Positions 17,365 to 62,560 of a stretch of 64,000 nt of DNA are shown piece after piece. The stretch is from Hypanus sabinus. Its lineage: Eukaryota. Each line of letters begins with the position of its first letter. Within the stretch, counting starts at the first letter, position 1. The DNA is taken from positions 153,140,001 to 153,204,000 of the forward strand of contig NC_082710.1 in NCBI RefSeq assembly GCF_030144855.1, read 5' to 3'. The notes below the pieces were generated by a model. The model had not been told where the DNA came from. It saw nothing but the letters and a program-made list of their open reading frames with translations, and did no database searches. The position numbers and the translations under genes were made by a program.

Positions 17365-17500
17365 TAAGAAGCAACTGCATCTGTTCAATTGTCCTCAAAA
17401 ACAGAAGTAGCTAGACTTTGCAGATCTCCCGTACACCCTCACTTGTGCTGTATCATTTGTGTAGTTCACCTAACATGTACCAACTTTACTTGTTGGGCAG

Positions 17501-17613
17501 GACTCAGTGAGCCCCATGGAGCAGGTCCCATACTACGGTTCATGGCTATGTTTGCAATGATTATTGAAGTGATGTAGAGGTACTGCTTAGAGTTAGCTGA
17601 GGCATTACTACAG
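17501..17613 (+). other. Paralogous terminal exon (G)LSEPHGAGPILRFMAMFAMIIEVM* of a probable upstream plus-strand class I-like gene or pseudogene
   Basis: About 77% identical to 37914-37838 over the coding part (18 differences in 78 nt counting the split codon); CTAAC branch point at 17470, AG at 17499-17500, TAG at 17575-17577, donor CAG|GTGGGT at 17614. Downstream homology runs to about 17900 and matches 37719-37624 and about 36710-36560. Confidence 0.55.
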
Positions 17614-25071: not shown

Positions 25072-25477
25072 TTTTATACAGTGGCTGGAGACGGTTTTTG
25101 GCGAGCATCTACTGGGAGGATCCTGGAAACCTGCCCAGAGACATGTCGGTGACTGGGTGTTGCTGCCTGCGCCCCCTTTCGCTGTCTGCACGTGTCCACA
25201 TCCTTACATGAAGAGGTTTGGCTCCGCACCCTGCCTCTGCACATCCTGTGCCTGGCCGGCTGTCTACCGCCCCACCTCCCTCCCTCCCTCTCTCCACACT
25301 CCGGAGCAGCGGCGGGGCTGTTTATTTCTGCAGGAAGATTTTTAATTACAGGAGTTCTTACTGGTTGTTCCTTGTAGAGAGCGCTATTTATCCCCGAATT
25401 GCCTCCGTGAATTTTATCTGCGCCCTCAGCAGTTTATTGGCAAACGAGTAGATTTGTCGAGGTGCGGTGACACCGCA

Positions 25478-25545
25478 ATGGAGAGTCGGAACGGACCGGG
25501 ATCGCTTCTTTTTACCATATTGTCTCTCTGCGGGAAGCCAGGCTG
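25478..25545 (+). pseudogene. Decayed paralogous leader exon (MESRNGPGSLLFTILSLC...)
   Basis: Aligns to exon 1 (reverse complement of 62073-62148) with an 8-nt deletion (tctgtcgc) causing a frameshift and the donor GT changed to GG (GGAAGG at 25546); read-through stops at 25562-25564. No plus-strand alpha-domain exons seen downstream. Confidence 0.8.
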
Positions 25546-37914: not shown

Positions 37915-40900
37915 CTGTCCACCAAGTAAAGATTGGTAAATTTATAAATTATGTTATTATTGTCACCAGTTACCAGATACAGTGGAAATACTTGTTTTGC
38001 ATTCTGTCCATACAGATCTTTACATCAGGATATTCAGGTTGTACAAGGGAAAGCAGTAACAGAATGTAAAGGAATGTATTACTTTTACAGAGGATGTGTG
38101 GTGCTGGCTGGCAATAAGATGCAAGATCAAATAAAAGTTAAACTGTGAGGTCAGATGTCCATCTTACTCTGTTTGGAGACTATTCAGTTTTCTTACACCA
38201 GCAAGACAGAAGTGTTCATTGATCATAGTAGTACATGCTTTCAGGCTTTTGTATCTTTTGCCTGATGGGAGCTGGGTGAAGTGGGGTGGGGGGGGGGGGG
38301 GGAGAATAATCCTTCTTCTTCTTCTTCCTTGAGTTTTTAAGGCAGTTGGCATCCACATTTTTGCCTTACTGCCATCTTCAGGATTTATGGTCCCTCATTG
38401 TCCATTCACTTGACTGCCTAAAGTAGTCTTTCCAGTCCCGTCACCGTCACCACTTTACTCCCCTACTCCTTCCCATATCTACTCTGTTCTGAATTGAATG
38501 TAAATGTCTTCCTTTTATTGCTCTATCGCAGTGCTGCTGCCACTATTGATTTATCCTTCTCCACACTATGCTCTTCCCTTCTGATTTTGAAAGTTTATTA
38601 TTGACCTCTACAAAACCTTTTTTGACTGCTGCTTTTGCCAGCTTATCTGCTGTCTCATTTCCCATAATACCCGAATGTGCTGGAATCCACATGAATGCAA
38701 TATTTTTGCCTTGTCTAGCCAGTCTTGAATTTGCAAACAGGATTTCATAAAGCAGATCCTGGTGTTCTCTAGCTGTACCTGCCTTAATGCTTGCAAGGGC
38801 CGATACAGAATCGCTACATATCACAAAATTACTACAGTCAACCTGCGCACTCTATTCTAGTGCTAATAGTATGGCAAACATGTGAACTGCATAAACACTC
38901 AAGCAATCCGGCGTGCTCTTGCTAATTTCCATTTGATAACTTGGCACAACAATTGCAGACCCTGTTGCACCCATTTCTGGATTCTTTGATCCATCCATAA
39001 AAATCTGTACGTCCTTGTATTTACATTCCCTATACCTATAATATTCACTGAGTATAGAAGCCGTTTTATTACTGCATTTAATCTGAAGCAATTCAAAATC
39101 TACAGAGCGATTTTCTACTACCCAGAAAGGTCTGACAGGCCACACCACACTTGGACAAAACTCTTTAACATATACACCCATTGTCATGATTCCAGTTGGC
39201 TGTTCCCCTTTAACACTTCTTTCTCCCTGATCAAGCCCCAATTTCAGTCAATTGCTGCTAGTTACCCAATAATTGTACACCTGGCTTTCATCAGAGACTG
39301 GGAAATAAATACGAGGACAACTCTATCACAGGTTGCCAGTTCATTGGTCAATTCTCCTATGATACTTTGTTCCCTGTTCTGATTAGAACCGTTAGTTCTA
39401 AGTTCTGCTCTAGTTTTTAGTGAGTCCCTGTGAATCCCGTCTCCTTATTAAGATTCCTCTGGTTTCCTGCTCTACGTTCAGGTCTACGCCAGCCTCCCCA
39501 ACTGAGTCGATGTGCCAGTGTCCTGCACTTGGGTTCTCCTCGGTCGCCCCTGTGTAACAGAACAAACTGACCAGAATGAACCCAGCGGACACGGACCCGG
39601 TGCAACAGGCCCTCGTTAGCCAGGGCTCCTGACTGGGCATACATGACCAACTACTCGGAGAAATCATGAAAGATCTTAGTGCCCTATCCGAGGATGTAAA
39701 GAAGGTCAGTGAGCAGGTTGACTGGGTATCCGCTCCCCTGACTCCGTCCCTTCCAAGAACCCAGTCTGACCAAACCGCACAGCCTGGGATGGCTACGCTC
39801 CTTGGCTTGGCAACACAATCACCTTGAGAGCCTTGCGTAACCGAACCAGAGCCCTACCCTGGGGACCTAGGGAATTGCCGGGTTTTCTTACTGCAGTGCT
39901 CTCTGGTTTTTGAGCAACAGCCATGTATGTACAGCTTGGACAGATTAAAAATTACGTACATCATGGGGATGTTAAGAGGGGATGCCTTAACATGGGCCAC
40001 CACGATCTGGGGCAACTGGCCAGAGGTCTGCTCCTGCATCTCCACCTTCATCTCCAAAATGAGGAAGGTTTCTGAACAGCCGTTTCGCGGGAAGGATGCC
40101 GCTAGGCGCCTTCTGACTCTCTGTCAGGGCTCGCGAAGCGTAGCAAAATACTCCGTAGAGTTCCGAACATTAGCGGCCGACTCTGGTTGGAATGACGAAG
40201 CACTACAATAAGTGTTTCGACTGAGTCTCTCTGACAAGATAAAAGATGAATTAGTGGCCAGGGATGACACGAACAGCCTGGACTCTTTGGTCTCTCTAGC
40301 CACCAGGGTAGATAATCAGTTTCGAGAACATCTGAGAGAAAAGACTGGTCACCCCGCTCCTCGGGTCATCCTACGGCCCACCTTACCATCTGCGGCCAGC
40401 CTCTCTTCCCCGTCCGCTCCTAGGGTAGCCCCCACTCCAACTGTTCTGGTGAATCAGACGACACTCCCTTCTGTTCCCCAAACCCAGATGCAGATCCAAG
40501 CTACTGTAACCTACAACCAACAGTCCCTATCCTTGTCTACCTTGATAGACTCCGGTGCTGAGGGGAATCTGTTGGATGAAGACATAGCTGCCCAGGCCAG
40601 AATTCCTCAGGAACCGTTGTCTACCCCTCTGGAAGCCCGGGCACTGGACGGAAGACTTCTGGCTCGAGTCACTCACCGTACTCCACCACTGTCTTTGATC
40701 CTCTCTGGGAATCATCAAGAGCAGGTACAATTTAGATAGATAGATAGATACTTTATTCATCCCCAAGGGGAAATTCAACATTTTTCCAGTGTCCCATACA
40801 CTTATCGTAGCAAAACTAATTACATACAGTATTTAACTCAGTATAAATATGATATGCATCTAAAATCACCCTCCCAAAAAGCATTAATAAATAGCTTTTA

Positions 40901-43900
40901 AAAAAGTTCTTAAATAGTTTACTAAAGTGCGTTGAGTGGTAACTTAAGCTCAGTCCTAACCCCGGCACTTTAACATGTCTTGCCCCTGGTGGTTGAATTG
41001 TAGAGCCGAATGGCATTGGGGAGTAATGATCTCTTCATCCTGTCTGAGGAGCATTGCATTAACAGCAACCTGCCGCTGAAGCTGCTTCTCTGTCTCTGGA
41101 TGGTGCTGTGCAGAGGATGTTCAGGGTTTTCCATGATTGACCGTAGCATACTCAGCGCCCTCCGCTCTGCCACCGACGTCATACTCTCCAGTTCTGAGCC
41201 CACGACAGAGTCCGCCTTCCTTACCAGCTTATTAAGACGTGAGGCATCCCTCTTCTTAATGCTGCCTCCCCACCACAAAGAAGAGGGCGCTCTCCACAAC
41301 TGACCGATAGAACATCTTCAGCATCTCACTACAAACATTGAATGTCGCCAGCCTTCTGAGGAAGTACAGTCGACTCTGTGCTTTCCTGCACAGGGCATCT
41401 GTGTTGGCAGTCCAGTCTAGCTTCTCGTCTAACTGCATTCCCAGATACTTGGTCCTAACCTGCTCCATACATTCTCCATTAATGATCACTGGCTCCATAT
41501 GAGGCCTAGATCTCCTAAAGTCCACCACCATCTCCTTGGTCTTGGACGTTGTCCCAACGTTCGGGCCCGGAACAAAACGACATCCCTGTGCCGCCTTCTC
41601 TCGCCGACTGTCCCCGCTGAATGAAACTACGACGTGGGGAACCGGGAGCTACTAGCGTTCAAACTGGCGTTGGAGAGGAGGCACTGGTTGGAGGGGGCGG
41701 AACACCCGTTCATCATCTGGACAGACCACAAGAACCTTGAATATATCTAGACTGCCAAAGGTCTGAAATCCCGCCAGGCCCGTTGGGCATTATCTTTTGT
41801 CCGGTTCAGGTTTTCCCTTACCTATCGTCCAGGGTCCAAGAACGGAAAGCCCGATGCCCTCTCCTGCCAATACATTTCCAAGAAGGACCTTCACAACCCC
41901 AAGACCATTCTTCCACCATCCTGTATAGTGGCTGCCCTCACCTAGGAGATTGAGTCCAGAGTCAAAGGCCCAAAGGACTCGACCCAGGCACCGGACTTCC
42001 CAATCGCCTCTTTGTACCCGATGCTGTTCGATCACAGGTTCTACAGAGGGGGCACACTTCTCGTTTTGCCTGCCACCCCAGAATCGATCGGACCTGACAC
42101 ACCTGAACAGGCATTTCTGGTGGCCCTCCATGGACTCTGACACCCATTCCTATGTTTCTGCATGTTCCGTCTGCGCCCGTGGAAAGGCCTCCCATCGGCC
42201 ACCTGCGGGATTACTCCGTCCCCTACCTGTCCGTGGGCGTCCCTGGTCCCACATCACTTTAGATTTTGTCACCGGTCTACCCTCTTCACATGGAAACACT
42301 GCCATACTGTATTGGACCGTTTCTCGAAGTCGGTGCATTTTGTAGCCCTTCCTAAACTACCTTCTGCACAGGAGACCGCAGACTTTCAAGTCACCCACGT
42401 TTTCCAATTTCATGGAATCCCTTCGGATATTGTCTCCAACCGGGGACCTCAATTCATTTCACAAGTTCGGAGATCCTTTTGTCGAACCCTTGGTGCCTCA
42501 GTTAGCCTGTCCTCCGGGTTTCACCCACAGACGAATGGGCAGACGGAGCACATCAACCAGGAGTTAGAGGCGGCATTACGTTGTAGACAGCCAACAACCC
42601 ATCTACCTGGAGCAACCATCTCGCATGGGTAGAATACGCCCACAACTCCCTGGTCAGCACCGCTACCGGAAAATCTCCGTTTGAAAGCTCTCTTGGGTAT
42701 CAACCCCTGCTGTTGCACACCCAGGAAGAGGAAACTGTGGTGCCGTCAGTCCAGGCCCATATACACAGGCGGAAGATCTGGCAAGACACACGCACGGCCC
42801 TGCTTCGCTCCGTCAACCTTAACCAAAAAATTGCCGACTGCCATCGTACCCCTGCTCCTGAGCATTGACCTGGGCAGATGGTGTGGCTCTCGTCCAGAGA
42901 CATTCTTCTCAAGAACAAGCCCAAGAAGCTTGCCCCCCACTTCCTGGGACCCTTTGAGGTTGAGAGCATTATCAATCCCACGGCAGTGCGGCTCAAACTG
43001 CCTACGTCAATGCAGATCCATCCTACATTTCACGTCTCCCAGTTAAAACCTGCTTCTGTCAGCCCCTTATGCCTTCTGACTGAACCCCTCCACCACCCCC
43101 TCCCCCCGGATCATCGACGACCATCAGGATTACACCGTCCAGCAGTTATTGGATGCCCACTGTTGTGGCAGGAGTGTCCAGTACCTGGTCAACTGGGAGG
43201 GGTACTGTCCAGAAGAACGTTCCTGGATCCCCCGCTCCTTCATCCTGGACCCCTCTCTCATTCGAGATCTCCATCGGGACCATCCAGAAAAGCCTGGGGG
43301 GGTCACCCGGAGGCTCCCGTTGAGGGAGGGATACTGTCATGGTTCCGGTTGGCCGTTCCCTTTAACACTTCTTTCTCCCTGATTTTTGCCCCAATTTCAG
43401 TCACTTGCTGCTAGTTTACCCAATTACCACACACCTGGTGTTCATCAGAGACTGGGGAACAAATACGATGGCGACATGATCAAAGGTTGCCAGTTTGTTG
43501 GTCAATTCTCGTGTGATACTTCGTTCCCTAGTCTGATTAGAACCGTTAGTTCTAAATTCAGCAGCAGTTTCTAGATAGTCCGTGTAGATCCCGTCTCCTT
43601 GTCAAGATTCCTCCAGTTTCCTGTTCTATGTTCAGGTCTATGCCAGGCTCTCCAACTCAGTCGATGTGCCAGTGTCCTGCACTTGGGGTCTCCTCAGTTG
43701 CCCCCCCCCCCACAACAGTAACAGGAACCTAAAGGGCAACATTTTAACCCATAGGGTGGTCAATTTATGGGTGCTAGAAGAAGTGGTTGAGGCAGACAAG
43801 TTAACATCTTTTAAAAGATACATCCAACAGTAGATGGATCTAAAGGGTTTAGAGAGATATGGGCCAGGATATATGGGAGTTTCTTGAAGGGGAATCTTGA

Positions 43901-46900
43901 TTGACAAAGGTGTGCTGGGCTGAAGGATCTGTTTCTCTGCTGCCAAATTTTATGAATCTATGACAATCAAACACTCAACAGCCAGGCAGTGACCACTTGA
44001 CAGTCAGGTCTTCCCCACAGTCCCAATTGCTTCTTAGTTGTTCTTTCTGTTGAGTTCCTATTGTGTTTCTTTGACCAACAGCTCAACTGTTTCTGTAACA
44101 GCTGGTGAGCAGAAGGAACAGATTTAATTTGAGTGGCAAAAGAGCATAGTAAATAATAACTGACAAAATGGAAATGGGATATGTTCTTAGAATTAAGAAA
44201 TTTTCAGGTGTGTGAGAAGAAGTGGGGCTACTTGAGCAAGTCTTTCAAAGTAGGGGACAGGGTGGTGAAGATAGCCTACAGGATGCTGGATTGCATTGAT
44301 CAGGGCATAGAATTCAAGAGAAGGGAACTAATAGTGTAGCTTCATGGTGGAGATCCTTGATTAGGTCTTTCAAAGAGTTAAATAGGGTGGTGAAGGAAGT
44401 GTACAAGATAACAATTATCAGTGCTTCGAATACAAGAGCACAGAAATTATGGTACAGCTTTATAAAACATTGGTGAGGCTACATTCTGAGTATTGTTTAC
44501 AGTTCTTGTCACCAGAGGAGAGGTAAGATGTGATTGAATTAGACAGAGTGCAGAGGAGATTCATCAGAATGTGGCTCAGATGGATTGGGAAGAGAAAATG
44601 GATACACTGGGTTTGTTTTCCTTAGATGGGAGGAGACTGAGGGTGGACCTGATGGAGTTATACAAAATTATTAGGGTTGTAGATAGGAAACACATAGAAA
44701 ATGTTGGAAGAATTTTTTTAAATATATATTAATTCTGTTATTGCACTATTTTCAAATCTGTTTAACATATATATATATATATACATTATAGTTGATTTAC
44801 TTATTTTATATTTCTTCTTTCTATATTATCATGCATTGCATTGTTCTGCTGCTGCTAAGGTAACAAATTTCACAACACATGCCAGCAACAATAAACCTGG
44901 TTTTAATTCTGAAGAATGCTGCAGGTTTTGCTTGCTGCAGTTTATGCTTCCATTTCATGTGTTTGCTTGAAATGTAGTAAACTTTTCCCCATAGTAAAGG
45001 TGCCTGTAACTCGAGGTAGGTTTAAGATAATGATTAAGAAGTTTGTAGGGAATCTACAGATGAATGCTTTCACCAAGGGGGTGTTGGAGTTGGGAATGGA
45101 CTGCGTGAGGAGATGGTGGAGGCAGAGACCCTCATAATTTTCAAGATGTATCTAGATGAGCACTTGACTCATCAAGTTAGAGAAGGGGACGGGTTGTGCT
45201 TTTGAGAACTAGAAGGTTTGCATGAATCAGGTAGGCTGAAGAGCCTCCTTCTCTGCTACATGAGACCATGAGCCACCACAGGCAGAATGAAGCAAATTCT
45301 GTACCGTATAATGACCTACCTCCCTTCACCACCAGTGCCTGTGTCAGGCTGCTGTGCTCGACGCGACAGGCATAGATGTTTGGGTTGTTGCCCTGCAGCT
45401 CAATGACTAGTTCCATCCAGTATGTATCATTGAAGTTCGGTAGCACGGTCACCTTGTAGCCCTCAGAAACAACCTGCCCATTCTTCAACCACGAGGCCTT
45501 GATAGCACGGGGGTAGAATGGAGTGATGATGCATGAGAGACTCTCGCCTGCAGTAGCTGTTGGCCTCCTTGTCGACACCTGAGCCTCTGGAGCAACTGGG
45601 GAAGAATCAAAGATTATGTCACCATCTCAACACAGGCTGATGTTACCTTACTGTTACAGGCTGAAGTTACAGTGTTCAATTTTGATATTACTCTCACATC
45701 CGTCACTACCTCAGAACGTGATCTTTCTCACTATTACACTCACTATCTGATCTGAAATCTGCCTCCCCAGACCAAGCTCATGCAGACGACAGACAGAGAT
45801 TACGTTCATTCATCTGACAGGTCCAGATCGAGGTCACAGGTACTGTTCCCAATCCAACTGTCATGCAATATCCCAAATTAAGATCATCTTCAAACTGCAA
45901 GATGGAGAATGTCCTCAGCACAGCGGTGGTGATGAGAAGGTCTCTCACTGCCCCTGATCGGGAGATCAGTCAATGTCTCGATTTGGGGGCGCCCTCACTC
46001 AAAGATTTGAAGTACATTAATTATCAAAGTGTGTATACAGAATACAACACTGAGATTTATCCTCCAATGCAGCAAAGAAACAAAGAGACACCAGCGAACT
46101 CCTTCAAAGAAAACATCAAACACCAAACATGCAAAGAGAGAACAGATTGCACAAACAGCAAAGTGAGCTAGCAACACATGGAATATCAAACATCTGAGCA
46201 GGAGTATTTCTGTTCTTAATTGTCCATTCCCCATCTGTTAGGGCATAATAGTGACAATGACTCCAGGGGCAGTGTCTTGTACTGTGTGAGAGATGTGAAA
46301 CATTCAGTGTCTCAGATAAACACACCTGCACCAGGTGTGTCAAGCTGAAGCTCCTCAGAGAATGTGTTAAGAAATTGGACCTGCAGCTCAATGACCTTAG
46401 CTTCATATGGGAGAAAGAGGAAGTGGTAGATAGGATCTACAGGGAGGTAGTCACCCTAGGTTGCAGAAGATAGATAAATGGGTGACTGTCAGGAGAAGGA
46501 GCCTGTGGACATTCCCCACAATATAGTGTGCCACTTTAAATACTGTTGAGGGGGACAACCTACCGGGGGTAACCATAGTGATCAGGTCTCTGGCACTGAG
46601 TCTGGTGCTGTGGCTCAGAAGAGCAGAGAGGTGAAGAAGACTGCAGTGTTGATAGCAGATTACATTGTCAGAAGAACAGAGACAAGATTCTATGGTTACT
46701 ATGGAGACAGCCGGATGTTATGTTGCCTCCCAGTTGCCTGGATCACAGATGTCTCAGATCAGGTCCATTGCATTTTCAGGAGGGAGGGTGAGCATCCAGA
46801 AATCTTGGTGCATATTGGCACCAATGACATGGGTGGAGAAGTTGAGGAGGTCCTGAAGAGAGATTTTAGGGAGCCGTGTAGAAAGCTGTAAAACAGGACC

Positions 46901-49900: not shown

Positions 49901-52900
49901 ATAGATTGGGTGAATCAAGTTGATGGAGGCAGTATTAAGGATGACTTCATAGAATGCATCCATGATGGCTTTCTTGAACAGCATGTTAATAAACCTACAA
50001 GGGAACATGCTATCTTAGATCTGGTCCTGTGCAATGATCAGGTAAAATTAGTGATGTTTTAGTTATAAAAAGTGATCACAGTGTGATTGAGTTTCTCATA
50101 CAAATGGAGGACGCAATAGTTCGATCGAAAACCAGTGTATTATGACTAAACAATGGAAACTACAATGGATATAGGGAGGATTTGGCTTGTGTGGACTGGG
50201 ACCACAGACCATATGGTGGGAGGTTTGAGAAACAGTGGAAGATTTCCAAAGAGATCTTTCCATAGTGTTCAACAAAAATGGATTCCAGTCAAAAGTGGGG
50301 AGTAAGTAAGGGTGGGGAGAGCCAGCCTTGGATAACTATGGAAATGAAAGAAGGCATCAAACTAAAAGCTTATTTGTACAAATTTGCCAAGAGTAGTGGG
50401 AAACTGGAAGATTGGGAAAACTTTAAAAAGCAACAAAGAACCACTAAGTGAGCAATAATGGAAGGGAAGACAGATTATGAAACTAAACCAGCACAAAATA
50501 TTAAAACGGTTTGTAAAAGTTGTTATAATTATATAAAGCAGAAAGGGGTGGCTTAAGTGAACATTGGTCCCTTGGAAGATGAGAAGGGGGATTAATATTG
50601 GATAATGAGGAAATGGCAGAGGCTTTAGATCTATGTTGTGTCGGTCTTCACAGTGGAGGTGGAGGACACGTCTAACGTGCCAAAGACAGATGTTATGGAT
50701 GCGATGGGAGGCAGGAACCCTGATACAATAGCTATCACTGAAGAGGTAGTGCTGAGCATACTTGTGGGCCTGAGGATAGATAAGTCCCAGGGTACTGAAA
50801 GAAATGGCAGAAGTTATAGTAGAGGCTTTGGTGATAATTTACCAAAATGGAACAATAGAGTTGGGGGTAATGTATTAGCATGGATAGAGGATTGGTTGAC
50901 TAATAGAAAGAAGAGAGTTGGGATACCTGGGGGTTACTCTGGTTGTCAATCAGTGGTGAGTGATGTGCTGCAGGAGTCTGTGCTGGGCTTGAGACTGTTC
51001 ACGATATACATTAATGATCTGGAAGAGGGGACGAGTGTAGTGTATCTAAGTTTATGTACGGTGTGGAAGCATCCTGAAATTTGTCAATAAGGTCTAAGCA
51101 GGAACTCCTGACACCTGAAAACTGCTGAATTGCATGTATTTTAAGGTATAAAAGATCATACTTGTGCTCACTTTAGCAGAGTCTTTTACTGGGCTCTCTG
51201 TAGTCATGTAATTAAGTAATTGAACTGAATACTGGAGTCTGTGTCTTTGTTTAATCGGCAATAGTAAATTTCTGTGACACTCAGTGTAGAGGAGCATCCT
51301 TTTAAAATGGAGATCAGGAAGTATTTCTTTTGCCAGAGAGCAGTACATCTGTGGAATTCGTTGCCACAAGCAACTTGGCAGCTGTGGAGGCCACATCTTT
51401 AGGTATATTTAAAACAGAGATTGATAGATTATTTATGGTCATGACATGAAGGGATACGGGTGAAGGCAGGACTTTGGAACTGTGAGGGATAATAGAGCAG
51501 CATGATGAAATGGCAGAGCAGACTCGATGAGCCAAATGGCCCCGTTCTGCTTCTATACCTTATGGTTTTATCGAGTCAAGATGTATTCAGTTTAGTTCAG
51601 TGCCTTGCCACTAGCCAAATGCAGGCTGCAGAATCAGTCTTCACTGAAGTGCCCAGTGTACACTGATGCACCCTGATCAAACCGCTCAGAAACAGCAAAA
51701 AAAGGGGAACCAGAATCCAGAAACACATGAACCCTAAAGTTCCCCAAAATGAGTCACAACCATGAGCCTCACCGATCAATCTGCAATGTGTAACACAAGC
51801 CTCCTCCACTTTCCTCCAACCGCAGCTAGGAAAAGGGAGAGGAATAGCAGCCAAATGCAATAGATGGCACCAAACACCAGCCTGGCCTCCGCCCCCGGCC
51901 TCGTCCACTTCAACCTTGCTCAACGCCTCAGTCAGAGAGAAGCAATGGAGCCAATCATGGGCTCACAGTCCTCCTCCAGGCCGGCGGGCTGTACACTCCA
52001 ATCAACTCACTGTTTCAAATTAGATCCCTCATTACGCCAGGTGGGAAACCCCTAACCATTTTGTTTTGGGAGCTTCCTCTCTTTCCCATATCAGGGGATC
52101 CCTCTGCATCTCAGATTGGGAGCTTCCTTACTGTCCAGATCAGGAGATTCCTCTCTGTCCCAGATTGGGAACACCATCAATTTGCTAGATCATCAAATCC
52201 TTCAGTATCTCGAATCATGACAGCCCACACCATCTCAGTCTCAGAGCCCCATAATCGTCTCAGACTGAGGTATCCCTTATGTCGCTGAATTGGGAGTTCC
52301 TTCACCATTACAGTATGTCTCCCTTACCTTGCCTTTCAAATGTTTCTTTTCCAAGCTGAACTGCTCTTTGCAAGGACTGAATGCAGTTAATCTTGAACGC
52401 AGTCACGACAGTGAAATTGAGTTGATTCAATTGATTATTGAACGCTGCTAGGACACCAGTGCCAGTGCATTTCTCTTCGTTGATATCACAGCTGACCTCT
52501 CCGAGATCCGGGATGTTGAATCTTAGAATCGCATTGAACATACTTCCAGATTGTGTGCAGCCCCAGAGTCCCTGTATGTAGCTGAAGCCTGTAAAGCACC
52601 AACAGATTAATTAACATCAACAGCTGAAGCTTCCAACACTTAAATCTGATATCCATTTGGATAATGGTCTGCTAAATACGTAAATGCTATGTGACAAAGA
52701 GGTGCACAAAGTAGTGGGTCACAGTGAGGGACTGTGTACAGTTAAGGCTGAGAGCATGGGGTGACAGTGTACCATATAGAACGTTTGTCAGTGTGTGGCA
52801 CAGATCACAGGGTCTTGTGGAATCAGTAATCAATGTGAGCAACTGTCTACATGGCAGGATGGGGGGGAAAGTTTAAAGAGATTCAATTTGTCATCAAAGA

Positions 52901-55900
52901 ATGGCAATGTTTTCAAACGTACAGTGAAAAGCATTCGAATTGGTTACATCACAGCTGGTAGGTAAACGCTAAAGCCCTGAAAGACAAAAGGCTGAGGGGG
53001 TGGTGGACTCAGCCAGTCCCATCACAGGTACAGCTCTCCGCGTCGTTCAGGACATCTGCTGAAGGCAATATCCCAGGAAGACAACATCCATCATCTGGAA
53101 CCACACCCTCCCTATCACCCAGGACAGACCCTCATCTTGATGCTCCCACCAGGAAGGAGAGACAGAGGCCTAAGGCGAGCACTGTGAGGGTCAAGTTTTT
53201 TTTTACTTTTACAGTGCATTCAACACGATCCGCCCTGCTCTGCTGGGTGAGAAGCTGACAGTGATGCAGGTGGATGCTTCCCTGGTGTCATGGATTATTG
53301 ATTTCCTGACTGGCAGACCACAGTGCATGTGCTTGCAACACTGTGTGTTAGACAGGGTGATCAGCAGCACTGGGGCTCCACAGGGCACTGTCCTGTCTCC
53401 GTTTCTCTTCACCATCTACACCTCGGACTTCAACTACAACACAGAGTCTGGCCATCTTCAGAAGTTTTCTGATGACTCTGCCATAGTTGGATGCATCAGC
53501 AAGGAAGATGCGGCTGAGCACAGGGCTAAGGTGGGAAACTTTGTCACATGGTGCGAGCAGAATCATCTGCAGCTTAATGTGAAAAAGACTAAGGAGCTGA
53601 TGGTGGACCTGAGGAGGGCTAAGGCACTGGTGACCCCTGTTTCCATCTAAGGGGTCAGTGTGGACATGGTGGAGGATTACAAATACATGGGGATATGTAT
53701 CGACAATAAACTGGACTGGTCAAAGAACACTGAGGCTGTCTACAAGAAGGGTCAGAGCCGTCTCTATTTCCTGAGGAGACTGAGGTCCTTTATCATCTGC
53801 CGGATGATGCTGAGGATGTTCTACGAATCTGTGGTGGCCAGTGCTATCATGTTTGCTGTTGTGTGCTGGGGCAGCAGGCTGAGGGTAGCAGACACCAACA
53901 GAATCAACAAACTCATTCGTAAGGCCAGTGATGTTGTTGGGGTGGAACTGGACTCTATGACGGTGGTGTCTGAAAAGAGGATGCTGTCCAAGTTGCATGC
54001 CATCTTGGACAATGACTCCCATCCACTCCATAATGTACTGGTTAGGCACAGGAGTACATTCAGCCAGAGACTCATTCCACCGAGATGCAACACTGAGCAT
54101 CATAGGAAGTCATTCCTGCCTGTGGCCATCAAACTTTACAACTCCTCCCTCGGAGTGTCAGACACCCTGAGCCAATAGGCTGGTCCTGGACTGGTTTCCA
54201 CTTGGCATGATAAACTTATTATTATTTAATTATTTATGGTTTTATATTGCTATATTTCTACACTGTTCTTTGTTGGTGCGACTGTAATGAAACCCAATTT
54301 CCCTTGGGATCAATAAAGTATGTCTGTCTGTCTGTCTGTCTAAGGACCCACACCTCAGGTTCTGACAAGAGTTCCATGTCCAATACCAACTGGTTCTTTA
54401 ACCAACCAGAAAAACATTAACATGACCCTAGATTATATTTTCTCTCTTAATCTTGCACAAATATTGTCACATTTATTTTGTTGTATATTTTGCACATGTG
54501 CAGGTTGTGTATATTTATTTAAAATTGACTCCATGCTAACATGTCCTGTAATACAGACTTCTGCTGCTGCAAAACAGTAATTTTATGGCATTTGTACCCT
54601 GTGTACGTAAGCCTATGATCAGAAATAAACTTGAGCTTGAACATATGCAGAGTGCACAGTACAGAGATCATGTTGAAACACTGTGCATACAAAGCAGGGG
54701 GCACATCGAAGGACTCTGTCAATATGTGGGACAGAGCAGGAGCTCAGTGAGAATCTGCGCTGTACAGTCTGCGCTGAACCAGGTCCACTGCAGAGTTACG
54801 GTGGAGAATTGTGAAAGCAACGTGTTTGTATTCAGTGTCAATAAGCACAGAGTGTGCACCACAGCAGGTCTGGTCGCTCTGTGATGGTGAGGCTTTGGAG
54901 AAGGTGCAGAAGATGCTTACCAGATGCTGCCTGCATTGAACAGCATGTGCTATAACAAGAGATTGGACCAACTTGGGCTGTTCTCTGTTTTAAAGTTGAC
55001 AGCTGGTATCATGTTTCCCTCAGGATTAGATCAGTTTGGGATTTGATTATCAATATAATTAGTTCAGCAGAACTTTGTGGGCCAAAGGGCCTATTCCTGT
55101 GCTGTTGTGTTCTATGTTCTAATGCACGGAGTCCCAGCACCGAATTAGATCTGGAAAGTGTCACTGTGGCAGGTGACTAGGTAAGCCATGGACATCTTAG
55201 TTCCAAGCCATCTGAGACATTCCCAAGTCTGGAACTGGGGAGTAGGCTGAGGATTGGGGTTAGAGCCAGACAAGGCCTGTGTGGACAGTGGGTTTGATTT
55301 TCACTGTTTCTCTGAAGAGGTCAGTGGGGAATGAAGACTGGATAATCAGCTTATTTTCAAGGGTCAGAACTTAGCCAGATGATTAGGATGGAATTCTTGT
55401 AATTGGAGTTAAGGAAGGTAGAGAGCAGAATGGAGATTTGAGAGATTAGAAAGAGTGAAGGACTTTAAACTTGATACAACAAAATCAGATCCAATATAAG
55501 ATCAAGATATTAGCAATATGCAAGTCACTGTGATACTCAAAGGGCAGATACTCAAAGACACTCACTAAAGAGTGAGGTGAATTGCTGCAGATGTGACGAG
55601 AGGAACTCATGAAGGCTGTCGGTTATTTCTTTCTGTTCTTTCTGGTAGTCAGTCAATAAGCCATCTGCAATCCACTGGCGCTTGATTTCTACTTCACGGA
55701 GGGTGCTGTCATAGTAGTCAATCTGCAAGTCATCCAACATCCCAATCCTGAAGAAGGCTGGCAGTTCAGTAATGTTGATGGATTGGAGGTAGAAATACAT
55801 CAAGCTGTGTGAGCCTGAGTAAAATGAGAGAGAGAGAGAAAGAGAGAGAGAAGTGTCAGAAAACAACAAAGGATGTTCACAATTTCTAAGGCATAACTCG

Positions 55901-58900
55901 GAAGTTTGATGGCATACTCACCACTTGAATAGATTAATACACATTCAAGCAGACATCCGACCAGATCAGGCAGCCCCCCCCCCCCCTATTAGCTCCCCAA
56001 ACATGAACAACAAACACTACTAAAACATGCTTCACTGCTCTGGCTGTGTACAAAATCCTAAGCAGATACTCAGCGAAGCCAATCCAACAGAACAACCCAA
56101 ACCCCAGCACAAAGGAGGTCAAGGGCAGCAGGCAAACAGGAGCCCCAACACCCACTATAGGGTTGCTTCTAATTCAGAGGCAAACATACTGGAATATGTG
56201 TCCACCATGATAGAGAGGAAGCCAAAGTTCAAGGAGAAGCAAAAGAAATTTCCGGGGCACCAGTTTAGAAATTCTCATCATCACAGCAAAGGTGACAGAG
56301 AAAGAGGACAGAAAATTGGTCATGGAGTCCCACAAGAGGCAGAGTGGGAGGATTAAAAGTAAAGATAGTTGTGTGAGTCTGTAGGTGGATCAGACATTTG
56401 TGAGTGCACTGAGGGTAGGAAAGACTTAGATATGCCCTGTATGAAGAGGAGAACAGGCTAGGAATTGGGAGCATCGAAAATGACAATTTCCAGTTCGGTC
56501 TGAGTGCAGGGAGCAGCACCAATACAGTGATCAATGTAAAAGGAAAGGAGCTGAGTGAGGGAGCCCAAGTGGGATTGAAACTTAGCACTCATTTCAAGAG
56601 GACTAGAATATAAAAGCAAAGGTGTAATGTTTGACTTCATAAAGCACTGGTGAGGCCTCATGTAGAGTATTGTAAGCAGTTTTGGAGCCCGTATCTTGGG
56701 AAGGATGTGCTGAAACTGGAGAGGGTTCAAAGAAGGTTCATCAAAATGATTCCAGGATTGAAAGGTTTGTCACATAAAGAGCATTTGATGTTTCTAGGCC
56801 TCTATTCACTAGAATTCAGAAGAATGAGGTGGGACCAAATTGAAGCCTGTCAAATGGTGAAAGCCCTTGACAGAGTGAATGTGGATAAGATGTTTTCAAT
56901 GGGGGGAGAGTCTAAGACCAGATAACAGTCTCAGAATAGAGGGGTGTCCTTTCAGAACAGAGATGAGGAGGAATTTCTTTAGTCAGGGAGTGGTGAATCT
57001 GTGGGATTCTTTGCCACAGGCAACTTAGCAGCAGTGGAGTCCAAGCCATTATGTATATTTAAGGCAGAGTTGATAGATTCTTGATTGGTCAGGACATGAA
57101 GGGATACAGGGAGAAGGCAACATATTGGAGCCGAGAGTAAAATTGACGTAGCAGAGCAGACTTGATAGACCAAATAGCCTAGTCTGCTCCTATATCTTAT
57201 GGTTTTATGGTACAACACTGTCACAGGTATCCAAGTGCAGAAGAGATATTCCAGAATGCTTCCTGGATTAGAGGACATAAGAATTGAATTAAATTGAATT
57301 GACTTTATTACTTACATCCTTCATATACAAGAGGAGTAAAAATCTTTGTCTCTGTTCAAGTGTGCAATGTACAATTATAATTATTTATTATAAATATTAT
57401 GTACAACAGGATAGTCAATATAACAGAAATACAGTTGTGTCTGCATGAACTAAGCAGTCTGTTGGTCTGGTGAAAGAAGCTGTCCTGGCTCTCATACTGT
57501 GGTACCATTTTCCAGATGATAGCAGCTGGAACAGTTGTAGTTGGGGTGATCCGTGTCTCCAATGATCCTTTGGGCCCATTTTACACACCTGTCCTTGTAA
57601 ATATCCTGAATAGTGGGAAGCCCACATCTACAGATTTGCTGGGCTGTCCGCATCACTCTCTGCAGAGTCCTGTGATTAAAGGACGTATAATTCCCATACC
57701 AGGCTGTGATGCAGCCAGTCAGGATGCTCTCAATCGTGCCTCTATAGAAAATTCTTAGAATTTGGAGGGGGCCATACCAAAGTCCTTCAACCATCTGAGG
57801 TGAAAGAGATGCTGTTGTGCCTTTTTCACCACACAGCCAGTTCATAAAAACCACGTGAGGTCCTTGGTGATGTGTATGCAGAGGAGAAGTTGTTCTCTGG
57901 AGTAGCAGAGACTGAGGGAAGATTTCATAGATGCTTATAAGATTACAAGACCATCCCAGGGTCAAAATATCTAACACTACAGGGCATATACTTAAAGCAA
58001 AAGGGAATAAGTTCAGAGGATATTTGTAGGGCAATGTTTATTTTACACAGAGTGGTCAGTGATGAAATCAGCCGTGAAGGCTGGTGGTGGAAGCAAATAC
58101 CACAGAGGTATCTAAGAAACACTTAGAAAGGCTCAGGAATTGCAGAGAATGGAAGGATTTGGACATTGGCAGAAGGGTTTAGATTAGTTAGGCATTTAGT
58201 TACTGGTTTAATTAATTTGGCACAACATCTTGGGCTGAAGGGCATATCCCTATTCTGCACCGCCCGGTGCTGTAATCCCAGAGAAAGATATCATAGGATT
58301 CTCCTGGTTGCTCTGAATTCCTCCCACACCCCAAAGATGGGTGGATTGGTGGGCTAATTGGTTGCTGTAACTCACCCTAAGATGTGTGTGAGTGGTCGAA
58401 TCTGGGAAGGTGTTGATGCGAATGAGGGAAGAATAAGTTTAGATGAGTGTAAAGGGGTGGTTGATGGACCCAAGATGACTGTACTGACTCTGCAGAAGAA
58501 TCACTTTCTTTAAAATCTTGATATTACTGACTAGCTGCATCATAACCTGATACAGAAACTACAATACACAGAAGACAAGAGCTGCAGAGAATGGTGGACG
58601 CTACCTGATCCACCACGGGCACATCCTTCCCCAACACTAGCAGTATCTACAGGAGGCACTGCCTCAAGAAGGCAGCATCTACCATCAAGGATTCTCACCA
58701 TCTACATCATGTTCTTCAACCAACCTGCGCAATCCTAACCCTACATCAGCAATGCAACACTACAGACTGCCTCTTGCACCTTTAAGACCATAAGACATAG
58801 GAGCAGATTTAGGCTATTCAGCCCATTGAGTCTTTCCCGCATTTCATTTTGGCTGAATCCGGATCTCACACAACCCCATACACCTGCATTCTCGTCATAT

Positions 58901-61900: not shown

Positions 61901-62148
61901 TTTTGCCCCGAGTTTATCGACTCCAGAAATGTCGCAAGAGTGAAATAGAACACAGGAGTGCGATGAGTTCGTCTTCCCGTCTAATGCAGCCACAGCCAGG
62001 AACTCTGAAAGATTTAAAGGTGAGTTTCCCGACACAACCCCCGACCATCGCCGTCACATACCCTCGCCTCACCTGTCTGGCTTCCCGCGACAGAGCAGAG
62101 AGAGAACGCGGTGACAAGGAGCGACACCGGTCCGGTCCAACTCTCCAT
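37838..62148 (-). CDS. Non-classical MHC class I-like heavy chain gene, 5 coding exons (62148-62073, 55814-55566, 52588-52328, 45595-45320, 37914-37838), predicted 312 aa; lineage not assigned
   Basis: All exons are bounded by AG/GT, every intron is phase 1 as in MHC class I genes, and the spliced frame (76+249+261+276+77=939 nt) is open. Domain order is leader-alpha1-alpha2-alpha3-hydrophobic C-terminus. Exon 5 is less certain than exons 1-4. Confidence 0.88.
38310..39181 (-). mobile_element. I/Nimb-clade LINE RNase H fragment
   Basis: [16 protein letters not shown]...[20 protein letters not shown]; (gaa)n tail near 38310-38330. Confidence 0.75.
39182..43723 (+). mobile_element. Decayed Gypsy chromovirus-like LTR retrotransposon (LTRs 39182-39559 and 43335 to about 43720; gag, protease, RNase H, integrase, chromodomain; RT missing)
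   Basis: TG...CA LTR pair, purine tract before the 3' LTR; [15 protein letters not shown] (gag), LIDSGAEGN (protease), TDHKNLEY (RNase H), [14 protein letters not shown] and HPQTNGQTE (integrase), QYLVNWEGY (chromodomain). Confidence 0.9.
40734..41544 (-). mobile_element. Rex1-type LINE 3' part nested in the Gypsy pol region
   Basis: (GATA)n tail at 40734; [13 protein letters not shown]...RLYFLRRL and [10 protein letters not shown] motifs. Confidence 0.85.
45320..45595 (-). CDS. MHC class I-like exon 4, alpha3 Ig C1-set domain (VAPEAQVS...[21 protein letters not shown]...[10 protein letters not shown])
   Basis: Acceptor ttcttccccag|TTGCT, donor GGAG|GTAGGT; 276 nt; C1 motifs LxC, FYP, WLKNG, YxCxVxHxSL. 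Confidence 0.95.
46180..48980 (+). mobile_element. Decayed CR1 LINE (ORF1, APE, partial RT)
   Basis: VHIGTND (esterase), [36 protein letters not shown]. Confidence 0.8.
49000..51570 (+). mobile_element. Second decayed, internally deleted CR1 plus a CR1 3' end
   Basis: LYLNASS...ITELWLQG...GGGVAL; [18 protein letters not shown]; CR1-type 3' UTR at 51280-51570. Confidence 0.75.
52045..52170. repeat. Degenerate ~24-bp tandem repeat (cagattgggagcttcctctctgtcc-like), 4-5 units, in intron 3
   Basis: Recurring agattggga / agatcagga ... ttcct units. Confidence 0.45.
52328..52588 (-). CDS. MHC class I-like exon 3, alpha2 domain ([11 protein letters not shown]...[20 protein letters not shown])
   Basis: Acceptor gctttacag|GCTTC, donor CAAG|GTAAGG; 261 nt; conserved Q-x-x-x-GC (Q96/C101) and C164...GKETxER C-terminal motif. 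Confidence 0.92.
53205..54341 (+). mobile_element. 5'-truncated Rex1 LINE, relatively young (one stop splits the RT)
   Basis: [32 protein letters not shown]; AATAAA followed by a (TGTC)n tail. Confidence 0.88.
55566..55814 (-). CDS. MHC class I-like exon 2, alpha1 domain (GSHSLMYFY...LQQFTSLF)
   Basis: Acceptor after a (CT)n tract (ttttactcag|GCTCAC), donor TTTA|GTGAGT; 249 nt; class I motifs GSHSLxYFY, G-x-LDD, YYDS, QW. Confidence 0.93.
56400..57230 (+). mobile_element. CR1 3' fragment
   Basis: [15 protein letters not shown]...LERVQRRF motif in ORF 56650-56925. Confidence 0.75.
57280..57890 (-). mobile_element. Rex1-type LINE 3' fragment
   Basis: [19 protein letters not shown] in ORF 57492-58034; (TTGAA)-like tail at 57280-57300. 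Confidence 0.7.
59740..60780 (-). mobile_element. CR1 ORF1/APE fragment
   Basis: [10 protein letters not shown]...VGITELWL...YRKDRQ in ORF 59756-59980. Confidence 0.65.
62073..62148 (-). CDS. MHC class I-like exon 1, signal peptide [25 protein letters not shown](G)
   Basis: ATG at 62148 in context gcaATGG, hydrophobic leader, donor CAG|GTGAGG at 62072, phase 1, joins in frame to GSHSL of exon 2; lies in CpG-rich sequence; a homologous copy exists at 25478. Confidence 0.85.
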
Positions 62149-62560
62149 TGCGACGACTCCTCGCATCGACTGAACCCTGATCGTTAGTCAGTGAAGTGCT
62201 GAGGGTGGAGTTAGACTCACAGACGCGGATTGAGGTAAACAGGGTTATTACAGGTGCAGCCAATAGCTGAAAATCCTTCTTCAGAAATGGACTGTGGACG
62301 CAGCGGAGAGTCGACTGATCGCGCGAGGAAGCGGAGCCAAACCGCTTCCAGCAGAGTTGCATCAAATCCAACGAGCGGAGATTTCAGGAACCTCGAGGGA
62401 AACCTCAAAGCCCGAGGGAAGCTGCTCAGCACAAACCTTCACCAGTCACTGGGTAAAACAAAACTTCTAGAGGAAATCGGCGGGCCAGGCGGCAGATGTG
62501 AAGGGAAAAGCTGGTTAACACAAAATGTCCACTGTCCATGTCCCTCCACAGCTGCGGCCA
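62149..62560 (-). promoter_or_regulatory. CpG-rich promoter/5' UTR of the class I-like gene with an inverted CCAAT (Y-box-like) motif at 62260-62264
   Basis: Directly upstream of the leader ATG; ctATTGGctg on the minus strand about 110 bp upstream of the ATG; blockwise homology with 24800-25477. Confidence 0.55.

Follow-up and report, generated by a model that had tools for sequence, protein, structure and literature searches.

What does an MHC class I-like molecule hold in its groove when the residues that grip the ends of a peptide are largely gone, and does it belong to a known lineage? Both questions are raised by positions 52328-55814 of the stretch analysed here (the window), 64,000 nucleotides from the Atlantic stingray, Hypanus sabinus. 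A sequence-only reading had proposed two exons of a non-classical class I gene in this interval, with a groove that might suit a lipid.

The gene and its lineage

Both exons lie exactly where they had been placed, on the minus strand, in phase 1 and with AG/GT borders. They are the alpha1 and alpha2 exons, that is the ligand-binding half, of a five-exon gene (Table 1). When joined and translated, the five exons give a product identical to the RefSeq protein XP_059825169.1 (P0144; Hypanus sabinus, 318 aa), provided that the leader exon ends at 62073. The interval is part of an intact, already annotated Atlantic stingray UFA gene, and all five exons have good splice sites. The leader opens with an ATG at 62166-62164, carries a second in-frame ATG at 62148 and is followed by a GT donor at 62072-62071. 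Another leader candidate, near a 13-G run (~55925-56050), was dropped since its frame is broken and no contig covers it.

Table 1. Exons of the UFA gene and the repeat fragment in its alpha1-alpha2 intron (positions in the window).
Feature	Position	Strand	Evidence
Leader (signal peptide) exon	62073..62166	-	tblastn with relatives' leaders; sequence
Alpha1 exon, 249 bp, phase 1	55566..55814	-	PDB 8gm8 E=9e-14; Pfam MHC_I 27.8 bits
LINE reverse-transcriptase 3' fragment, stop-interrupted	53200..54180	+	ORFs; Pfam RVT_1 7e-10
Alpha2 exon, 261 bp, phase 1	52328..52588	-	PDB 8gm8 E=2.4e-8
Alpha3 exon, 276 bp, Ig C1-set domain	45320..45595	-	Pfam C1-set 5e-13; PDB 8gm8 1.7e-21
Terminal coding exon, stop TAG 37840-37838	37838..37914	-	Sequence; tblastn 100% to relatives' tails; joined model check

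The exons were queried separately in the PDB sequence and Pfam searches. The Pfam MHC_I score of alpha1 is slightly below the 28.3-bit cut-off, and the alpha2 exon alone has no Pfam match and was identified through the PDB sequence search instead. Seven codons shorter than a classical alpha1, the alpha1 exon encodes Y7, Y59 and an N-I-T sequon, and its R84 region is deleted. The alpha2 exon encodes the equivalents of C101 and C164, an N-F-T sequon, a helix that is 3 residues shorter and an extra cysteine pair, C148/C155, in which C155 replaces W133. The C-terminus is short and hydrophobic and has no cytoplasmic tail. The LINE fragment does not contribute to the gene product; repeat depth over it is very high in all runs. 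The window also contains relic leader and tail exons, and a run of N at 29003-29133.

To which class I lineage the gene belongs, known or new, had been left to a tree. The best PDB sequence match for all three domain exons is 8gm8_A (titled 'shark nonclassical MHC class I, UFA'), which for alpha2 is the only significant one. With an AlphaFold model as query, Foldseek placed 8gm8 first (E 1e-25, TM 0.90), and VIA-align over 48,161 chains likewise put this UFA structure at the top (Z 24.6, rmsd 2.0 Å, 253 residues); the runner-up was shark UGA (9CH4; Z 24.0), with all remaining chains at Z <= 22.1. In the ML tree XP_059825169.1 falls inside a UFA clade supported at 100/100; UGA-like sequences are sister to it at 100/97, with UAA and bony-fish class I branching outside the UFA + UGA clade. 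The protein thus does not group with classical UAA, the outcome that would have counted against the sequence-only reading. The tree was built without named UBA, UCA, UDA and UEA sequences, and the UFA label is taken directly from the PDB title. We conclude that the gene is a member of UFA, a known shark and ray nonclassical MHC class I lineage, and not a new lineage. UFA maps to an MHC-linked class Ib cluster together with UDA and UEA (PMC10751288).

The stingray protein and nurse-shark UFA (8GM8) have in common the domain order, the loss of peptide anchors, the deletion of the R84 region and the additional pair of cysteines, one of them at the W133 position. The short, hydrophobic tail without a cytoplasmic part recurs in full-length shark UFA orthologs. 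The two proteins are nevertheless distant: identity is only 35/29/47% in alpha1/alpha2/alpha3, the stingray alpha2 helix lacks 3 residues, and most pocket residues are not identical. Shark UGA (9CH4), a near-equal fold match, is 25-26% identical to the model in structure-based alignments. The UGA-like sequences compared keep K/R146, W147, Y171 and W133, end in a transmembrane segment followed by a cytoplasmic tail, and score 97 bits against Pfam MHC_I versus 28 for the stingray protein. With classical shark UAA the gene shares the exon plan, phase-1 introns, C101-C164, Y7, Y59, a C1-set alpha3 and, towards the end of alpha2, a GKET motif, whereas identity per domain is 31/13/28% (alpha1/alpha2/alpha3), the stingray helices are shorter, and the stingray protein has no transmembrane segment plus tail.

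Peptide-end anchors and the groove

Anchor equivalences were read from a MAFFT alignment with Triakis classical UAA. Positions were carried over to shark UAA from HLA-A2 numbering, a mapping that is approximate near positions 148-158. Nine residues secure the peptide ends in classical class I, and of these the stingray protein retains only Y7 (Y38 of the precursor) and Y59 (Y88), in line with the sequence-only reading, which had called Y59 probable. R84 is among 6 residues missing from the end of the alpha1 helix, T143, K146 and W147 are replaced by F164, Q167 and L168, and Y159, W167 and Y171 by A178, S186 and A190, so that seven anchors are lost and the whole F-pocket end is gone. C101 and C164 are retained as C125 and C183. 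The equivalence at Y159 hinges on gap placement, as a HMMER alignment to rat RT1-A shifts the helix gap and pairs Y159 with F. The string NNQLNQL, given earlier for the T143/K146/W147 segment, is indeed there as residues 165-171, with F164 as the T143 equivalent. Since the identical anchor pattern is common to all sharks, skates and rays of the UFA clade, it is ancient and maintained. The description of the gene as non-classical is borne out, and so is the loss of its anchors.

Both helix strings quoted in support of hydrophobic helices are found in the protein, and for alpha2 the description stands: the hydrophobic fraction of this helix is 0.54 versus 0.34 in UAA, and its charged fraction 0.06 versus 0.34. 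It does not stand for alpha1, where the fraction (0.32) equals that of UAA. MHC helices normally show periodic hydrophobic residues, whose presence alone has no diagnostic value, and the argument from helix hydrophobicity is weak for alpha1.

At 34 canonical pocket positions the hydrophobic fraction, an alignment-based and not a geometric measure, is 0.52 here, 0.41 in UAA and 0.64 in nurse-shark UFA. Several replacements are small or greasy (R97>G, D116>F, T73>F, G74>L, Y159>A, Y171>A), and other positions are still polar or charged (R24, D34, Q63, H77, Q80, E123, Q146, N163, S167). Only ~7/34 positions are identical to the solved nurse-shark UFA. The 3-residue deletion in the alpha2 helix, common to one batoid subgroup, removes a conserved F/L at position 156 that is present in sharks, and could narrow the groove.

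These shortened helices (alpha1 by 7 residues, alpha2 by 5) raise the possibility that the groove is closed and that this UFA protein has no ligand, acting instead at the surface as a ligand or receptor in the manner of MIC/ULBP, HFE or FcRn. Such a molecule would fit the residues missing from the end of the alpha1 helix and from inside the alpha2 helix, and also the several polar pocket positions. The fold comparisons point the same way: by VIA-align, FcRn (Z 22.1) and HFE (21.8) match the model as well as chicken CD1-1 (22.1) and human CD1d (20.4) do, CD1 being no better than FcRn, HFE or H-2K, and the ULBP6 and MICB platforms fit it at rmsd 2.9 Å. However, UFA, reported to bind lipid, is the nearest structure, clearly so in sequence and by a small margin in fold; pocket positions keep a hydrophobic or small residue throughout the 31 UFA sequences compared; and the changes of Y159, Y171 and R97 to A, A and G enlarge the cavity rather than fill it. 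We therefore regard an empty, closed groove as unlikely.

The candidate ligand

The UFA binding region has been described as CD1-like on unpublished data (PMC10751288), and structure and mass spectrometry, cited as a personal communication, suggest that the lipids held by UFA resemble those of human CD1d (PMC12562908). The stingray protein matches the CD1-like description, with two of the nine anchors kept and, by alignment, a more hydrophobic pocket lining than UAA. UGA is likewise described as CD1-like (PMC12562908). Our literature search found no paper citing 8GM8 or 9CH4. As the UFA lipid reports rest on unpublished data, the lipid reading of the stingray protein draws its support from homology, and its identity to the solved nurse-shark structure is only 29-35% across alpha1 and alpha2. 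The earlier guess of a lipid ligand is supported in that it fits a known family reported as lipid-binding. By this homology, the groove of the stingray UFA protein probably holds a lipid or another hydrophobic, non-peptide ligand.

CD1 presents lipid ligands in amniotes. Like its shark relative, the stingray protein would pair with beta2-microglobulin and be attached to the cell surface through its short hydrophobic tail, probably by a GPI anchor. With a groove unable to clamp peptide termini, it would carry such a lipid or hydrophobic ligand and present it to T or NK-type cells in the way CD1 does. The likeness to CD1 and EPCR concerns this proposed working, namely a class I-like platform that holds lipid tails without peptide clamps. 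As to CD1 orthology, no CD1 chain appears among the PDB sequence matches of alpha1 and alpha2, and Pfam MHC_I_3 has no match to XP_059825169.1. Unlike CD1, the stingray protein has no cytoplasmic tail and hence no tyrosine endosomal sorting motif; EPCR differs in having no alpha3 (Z 15.8), whereas the stingray gene has a C1-set alpha3 exon.

Some nonclassical class I molecules present peptides or lipopeptides without the usual end clamps, and chicken YF1*7.1 binds acylated amino acids and lipopeptides. Foldseek ranks entries of YF1*7.1 carrying N-acylated ligands among the best matches of the model, whose overall fold is closer to class I than to CD1, and the retained Y7 and Y59 would also suit this mode of binding. 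With seven of nine end anchors lost, including the whole F-pocket end, and an alpha2 helix nearly devoid of charged residues, we nevertheless think peptide or lipopeptide presentation quite improbable for the stingray protein.

UFA copies in rays

UFA has been called single- or low-copy (PMC12562908), and shark species gave one match each. This does not hold in the stingray: H. sabinus has five distinct UFA genes, all on one 187-Mb record and each with an ortholog in the red stingray (Hemitrygon akajei), and Mobula birostris has at least five. The difference in copy number in rays is no ground for excluding the gene from the UFA lineage. The five H. sabinus copies differ mainly in alpha2, and the gene in the window keeps the conserved alpha2 form and both disulfides. 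Its 1:1 red stingray ortholog is 95% identical overall. Spliced contigs in two runs (presumed RNA) connect alpha1 and alpha2 precisely at the predicted GT..AG. In their variants they agree with the Hemitrygon akajei ortholog; they are evidence for that ortholog or for an allele related to it and cannot be attributed with confidence to the H. sabinus copy.

The genome has five paralogs, the window contains relic exons of the leader and tail types, and most of the alpha2 nucleotide differences listed against the ortholog alter an amino acid; on these grounds the gene might be seen as a redundant duplicate drifting to loss of function, its anchor losses reflecting relaxed constraint and not a new ligand. 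We consider this very improbable, given five intact exons with good splice sites, the closely similar 1:1 ortholog, spliced into RNA with alpha2 included, an anchor pattern common to the sharks, skates and rays of the clade, and the retention of both disulfides.

It is conceivable, if doubtful at present, that stingrays and devil rays expanded a normally single UFA into an isoform family (of five members each in Hypanus and Hemitrygon and of five or more in Mobula), with leader, alpha3 and tail near-identical, alpha2 at ~50% identity and disulfides lost in some copies. Such a family would be a counterpart of human CD1a-e, its members serving differing lipid classes or receptors, and the gene in the window would be the ancestral-type isoform.

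As the gene is already annotated and its lineage already known, the finding is confirmatory, adding a ray member to UFA. Together, UFA and UGA are evidence for lipid-presenting CD1-like molecules in the earliest jawed vertebrates. What is modestly new is the copy number: in Myliobatiform rays UFA forms a multigene family whose members diverge chiefly in the alpha2 half of the groove, a point absent from the published remarks on single or low copy number. The ray UFA copies form a concrete panel of naturally varying grooves on which ligand range can be tested.

The window gene and its lineage

The two exons at 52328-55814 (minus strand), both phase 1 with clean AG/GT borders, belong to a gene of five exons. 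Joined in a script, these five gave 318 residues identical to P0144, the Hypanus sabinus RefSeq protein XP_059825169.1, named "MHC class I-related gene protein-like". Since the spliced product matches this entry exactly, the H. sabinus UFA gene in the window is real, intact and previously annotated. Its Pfam MHC_I score (28.1 bits) lies marginally below the 28.3 cut-off, as does that of nurse-shark UFA (26.8 bits). The introns are rich in repeat debris, and a LINE reverse-transcriptase fragment lies within the alpha1-alpha2 intron.

Exons of the UFA gene and other features of the window
Feature	Position	Strand	Remarks
Leader (signal-peptide) exon	62073-62166	-	tblastn with leaders of relatives
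Alpha1 exon	55566-55814 (249 bp)	-	phase 1, AG/GT; begins with the class I hallmark G-S-H-S-L-M-Y-F-Y
Alpha2 exon	52328-52588 (261 bp)	-	phase 1, AG/GT; cysteines in W-G-C and I-N-C; ends L-G-K-E-T-F-E-R-Q
Alpha3 exon	45320-45595 (276 bp)	-	C1-set domain, downstream of alpha2
Terminal exon	37838-37914	-	codes solely for a short hydrophobic stretch and stop
LTR-retroelement remains	40212-43414	+	within the long alpha3-to-terminal-exon intron; aspartyl protease and integrase core domains
Decayed UFA leader exon and upstream region	25466-25545	+	~78% identical to 62040-62300 (-); 8-bp deletion in signal-peptide coding part; donor GG instead of GT; not followed by alpha1-3 exons on its strand in the window
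Second short hydrophobic terminal exon	17497-17574	+	opposite strand to the gene; 54% protein identity; no alpha3 exon upstream within the window
13-base C run (G on gene strand)	55967-55979		intron 1, ~150 bp upstream of alpha1 exon; adjoins a strong-looking, unused GT donor; covered by no contig
131 N	29003-29133		assembly gap or mask

Contigs of two sequencing runs span exactly the alpha1 and alpha2 exons and lack the intervening 2,977 bp, with the junction at the predicted GT..AG; one of them continues 561 bases further. They differ from the window at S105T, L85S, G83A, S130N, F132V and R137K, in each case carrying the residue of P0131, the Hemitrygon akajei ortholog. The contigs speak for a spliced transcript that includes alpha2 and comes from the ortholog or from an allele very like it; for the window's copy they are no direct proof. 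RefSeq annotates putative 231-residue isoforms for several UFA paralogs of H. sabinus and H. akajei (P0110, P0132, P0001), in which alpha2 is skipped and alpha1 joined to alpha3.

The lineage had been left open by the sequence-only reading. In separate searches of PDB sequences with the individual exons, 8gm8_A was the top match for all three (alpha1 9e-14, alpha2 2.4e-8, alpha3 1.7e-21) and, for alpha2, the sole significant one. This entry is titled "Crystal structure of shark nonclassical MHC class I, UFA", and its chain matches P0163 of the nurse shark Ginglymostoma cirratum. Foldseek with an AlphaFold2 model of P0144 (pLDDT 79) also ranked 8GM8 first. VIA-align of the model against 48,161 representative chains gave Z 24.6 for UFA (rmsd 2.0 A, 253 residues) and 24.0 for UGA (9CH4, whose title ends "... 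UGA"), above a plateau of FcRn (22.1), chicken CD1-1 (22.1), HFE (21.8), H-2Kd (21.6), ZAG (20.6) and CD1d (20.4); EPCR scored 15.8. An IQ-TREE analysis covered 40 proteins, the groups compared being UFA, UGA-like, UAA and bony-fish class I sequences. It placed P0144 in a clade with 100/100 support that also holds P0163 and eight further sharks, each with a single sequence; two UGA-like sequences are sister to it (100/97). Clustering with classical UAA, named beforehand as an outcome that would contradict the sequence-only reading, was not what the ML tree gave: UAA and bony-fish class I fall outside the UFA/UGA-like grouping. The gene is a UFA member, and this lineage was already known.

Two further features are shared with the lineage. 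Almost every UFA sequence, 8GM8 included, conserves an extra cysteine pair, C148 and C155 in P0144; C155 takes the place of W133, a residue otherwise invariant, and the model places both cysteines on adjacent strands of one hairpin. A hydrophobic C-terminus without a tail is common to every full-length UFA member of A1, our MAFFT protein alignment.

Groove residues and the lipid-ligand reading

Alignment A1, to Triakis UAA and other class I, reproduced the loss of peptide anchors proposed from the sequence. P0144 keeps Y7 and Y59, R84 falls within a 6-residue deletion at the alpha1 helix end, and T143/K146/W147/Y159/W167/Y171 of UAA read F/Q/L/A/S/A; only Y159 varies with gap placement, being F in the HMMER alignment to rat RT1-A. 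None of the 31 related sequences from sharks, skates and rays has R84, and all 31 carry non-classical residues at 143, 147, 159, 167 and 171, while classical and bony-fish class I in the same alignment retain the anchors. Anchor loss is therefore common to UFA relatives and not private to the H. sabinus gene.

The claim of hydrophobic helices held for alpha2 but not for alpha1. The alpha2 helix has a hydrophobic share of 0.54 (0.34 in UAA) and is almost without charge (0.06 versus 0.34), whereas the alpha1 share of 0.32 equals that of UAA. By alignment, hydrophobic residues make up 0.52 of the 34 canonical pocket positions in P0144, compared with 0.41 for UAA and 0.64 for the crystallised shark UFA; space-making or greasy changes, with approximate position mapping, are R97>G, D116>F, T73>F, G74>L, Y159>A and Y171>A. 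PMC10751288 regards the antigen-binding part of UFA as CD1-like and assigns the gene to a class Ib cluster of the MHC, alongside UDA and UEA. According to a personal communication in PMC12562908, the crystal structure and mass spectrometry point to lipid binding by UFA and UGA, with lipids comparable to the ligands of human CD1d. The lipid reading of the H. sabinus protein rests on homology; a putative lipid ligand is supported by likeness to a protein whose lipid binding is reported, not yet fully published.

Copy number and alpha2 divergence in rays

UFA and UGA have been termed single- or low-copy (PMC12562908). Word searches with one stingray paralog and one shark member as queries found one UFA per shark and per skate species, a single multi-isoform gene in Narcine, two copies in Pristis, at least five in Mobula birostris, and five each in Hypanus sabinus and Hemitrygon akajei, paired 1:1. 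The stingray paralogs are 90-100% identical in leader, alpha3 and tail, 73-81% in alpha1 and only 49-55% in alpha2; between orthologs, alpha2 identity is 84-95% (at least 91% in four of the five pairs). Three paralogs share a 4-residue deletion and lack the extra pair's second cysteine; C164 too is gone from one of the three. In an alpha2-only tree these three paralogs sit on a long stem (0.31, support 99). The window gene's alpha2 is nearer to those of Mobula and Pristis (62-71%) than to its own paralogs, and this gene is the conservative UFA form among the stingray paralogs. The pattern reflects either fast evolution after duplication or the persistence of old alpha2 types while the rest of the gene was homogenised; under both readings, it is chiefly in the alpha2 half of the groove that the paralogs have diverged. 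With gene and lineage already known, the multiplication of UFA in rays with alpha2 divergence is the single, modestly new point.
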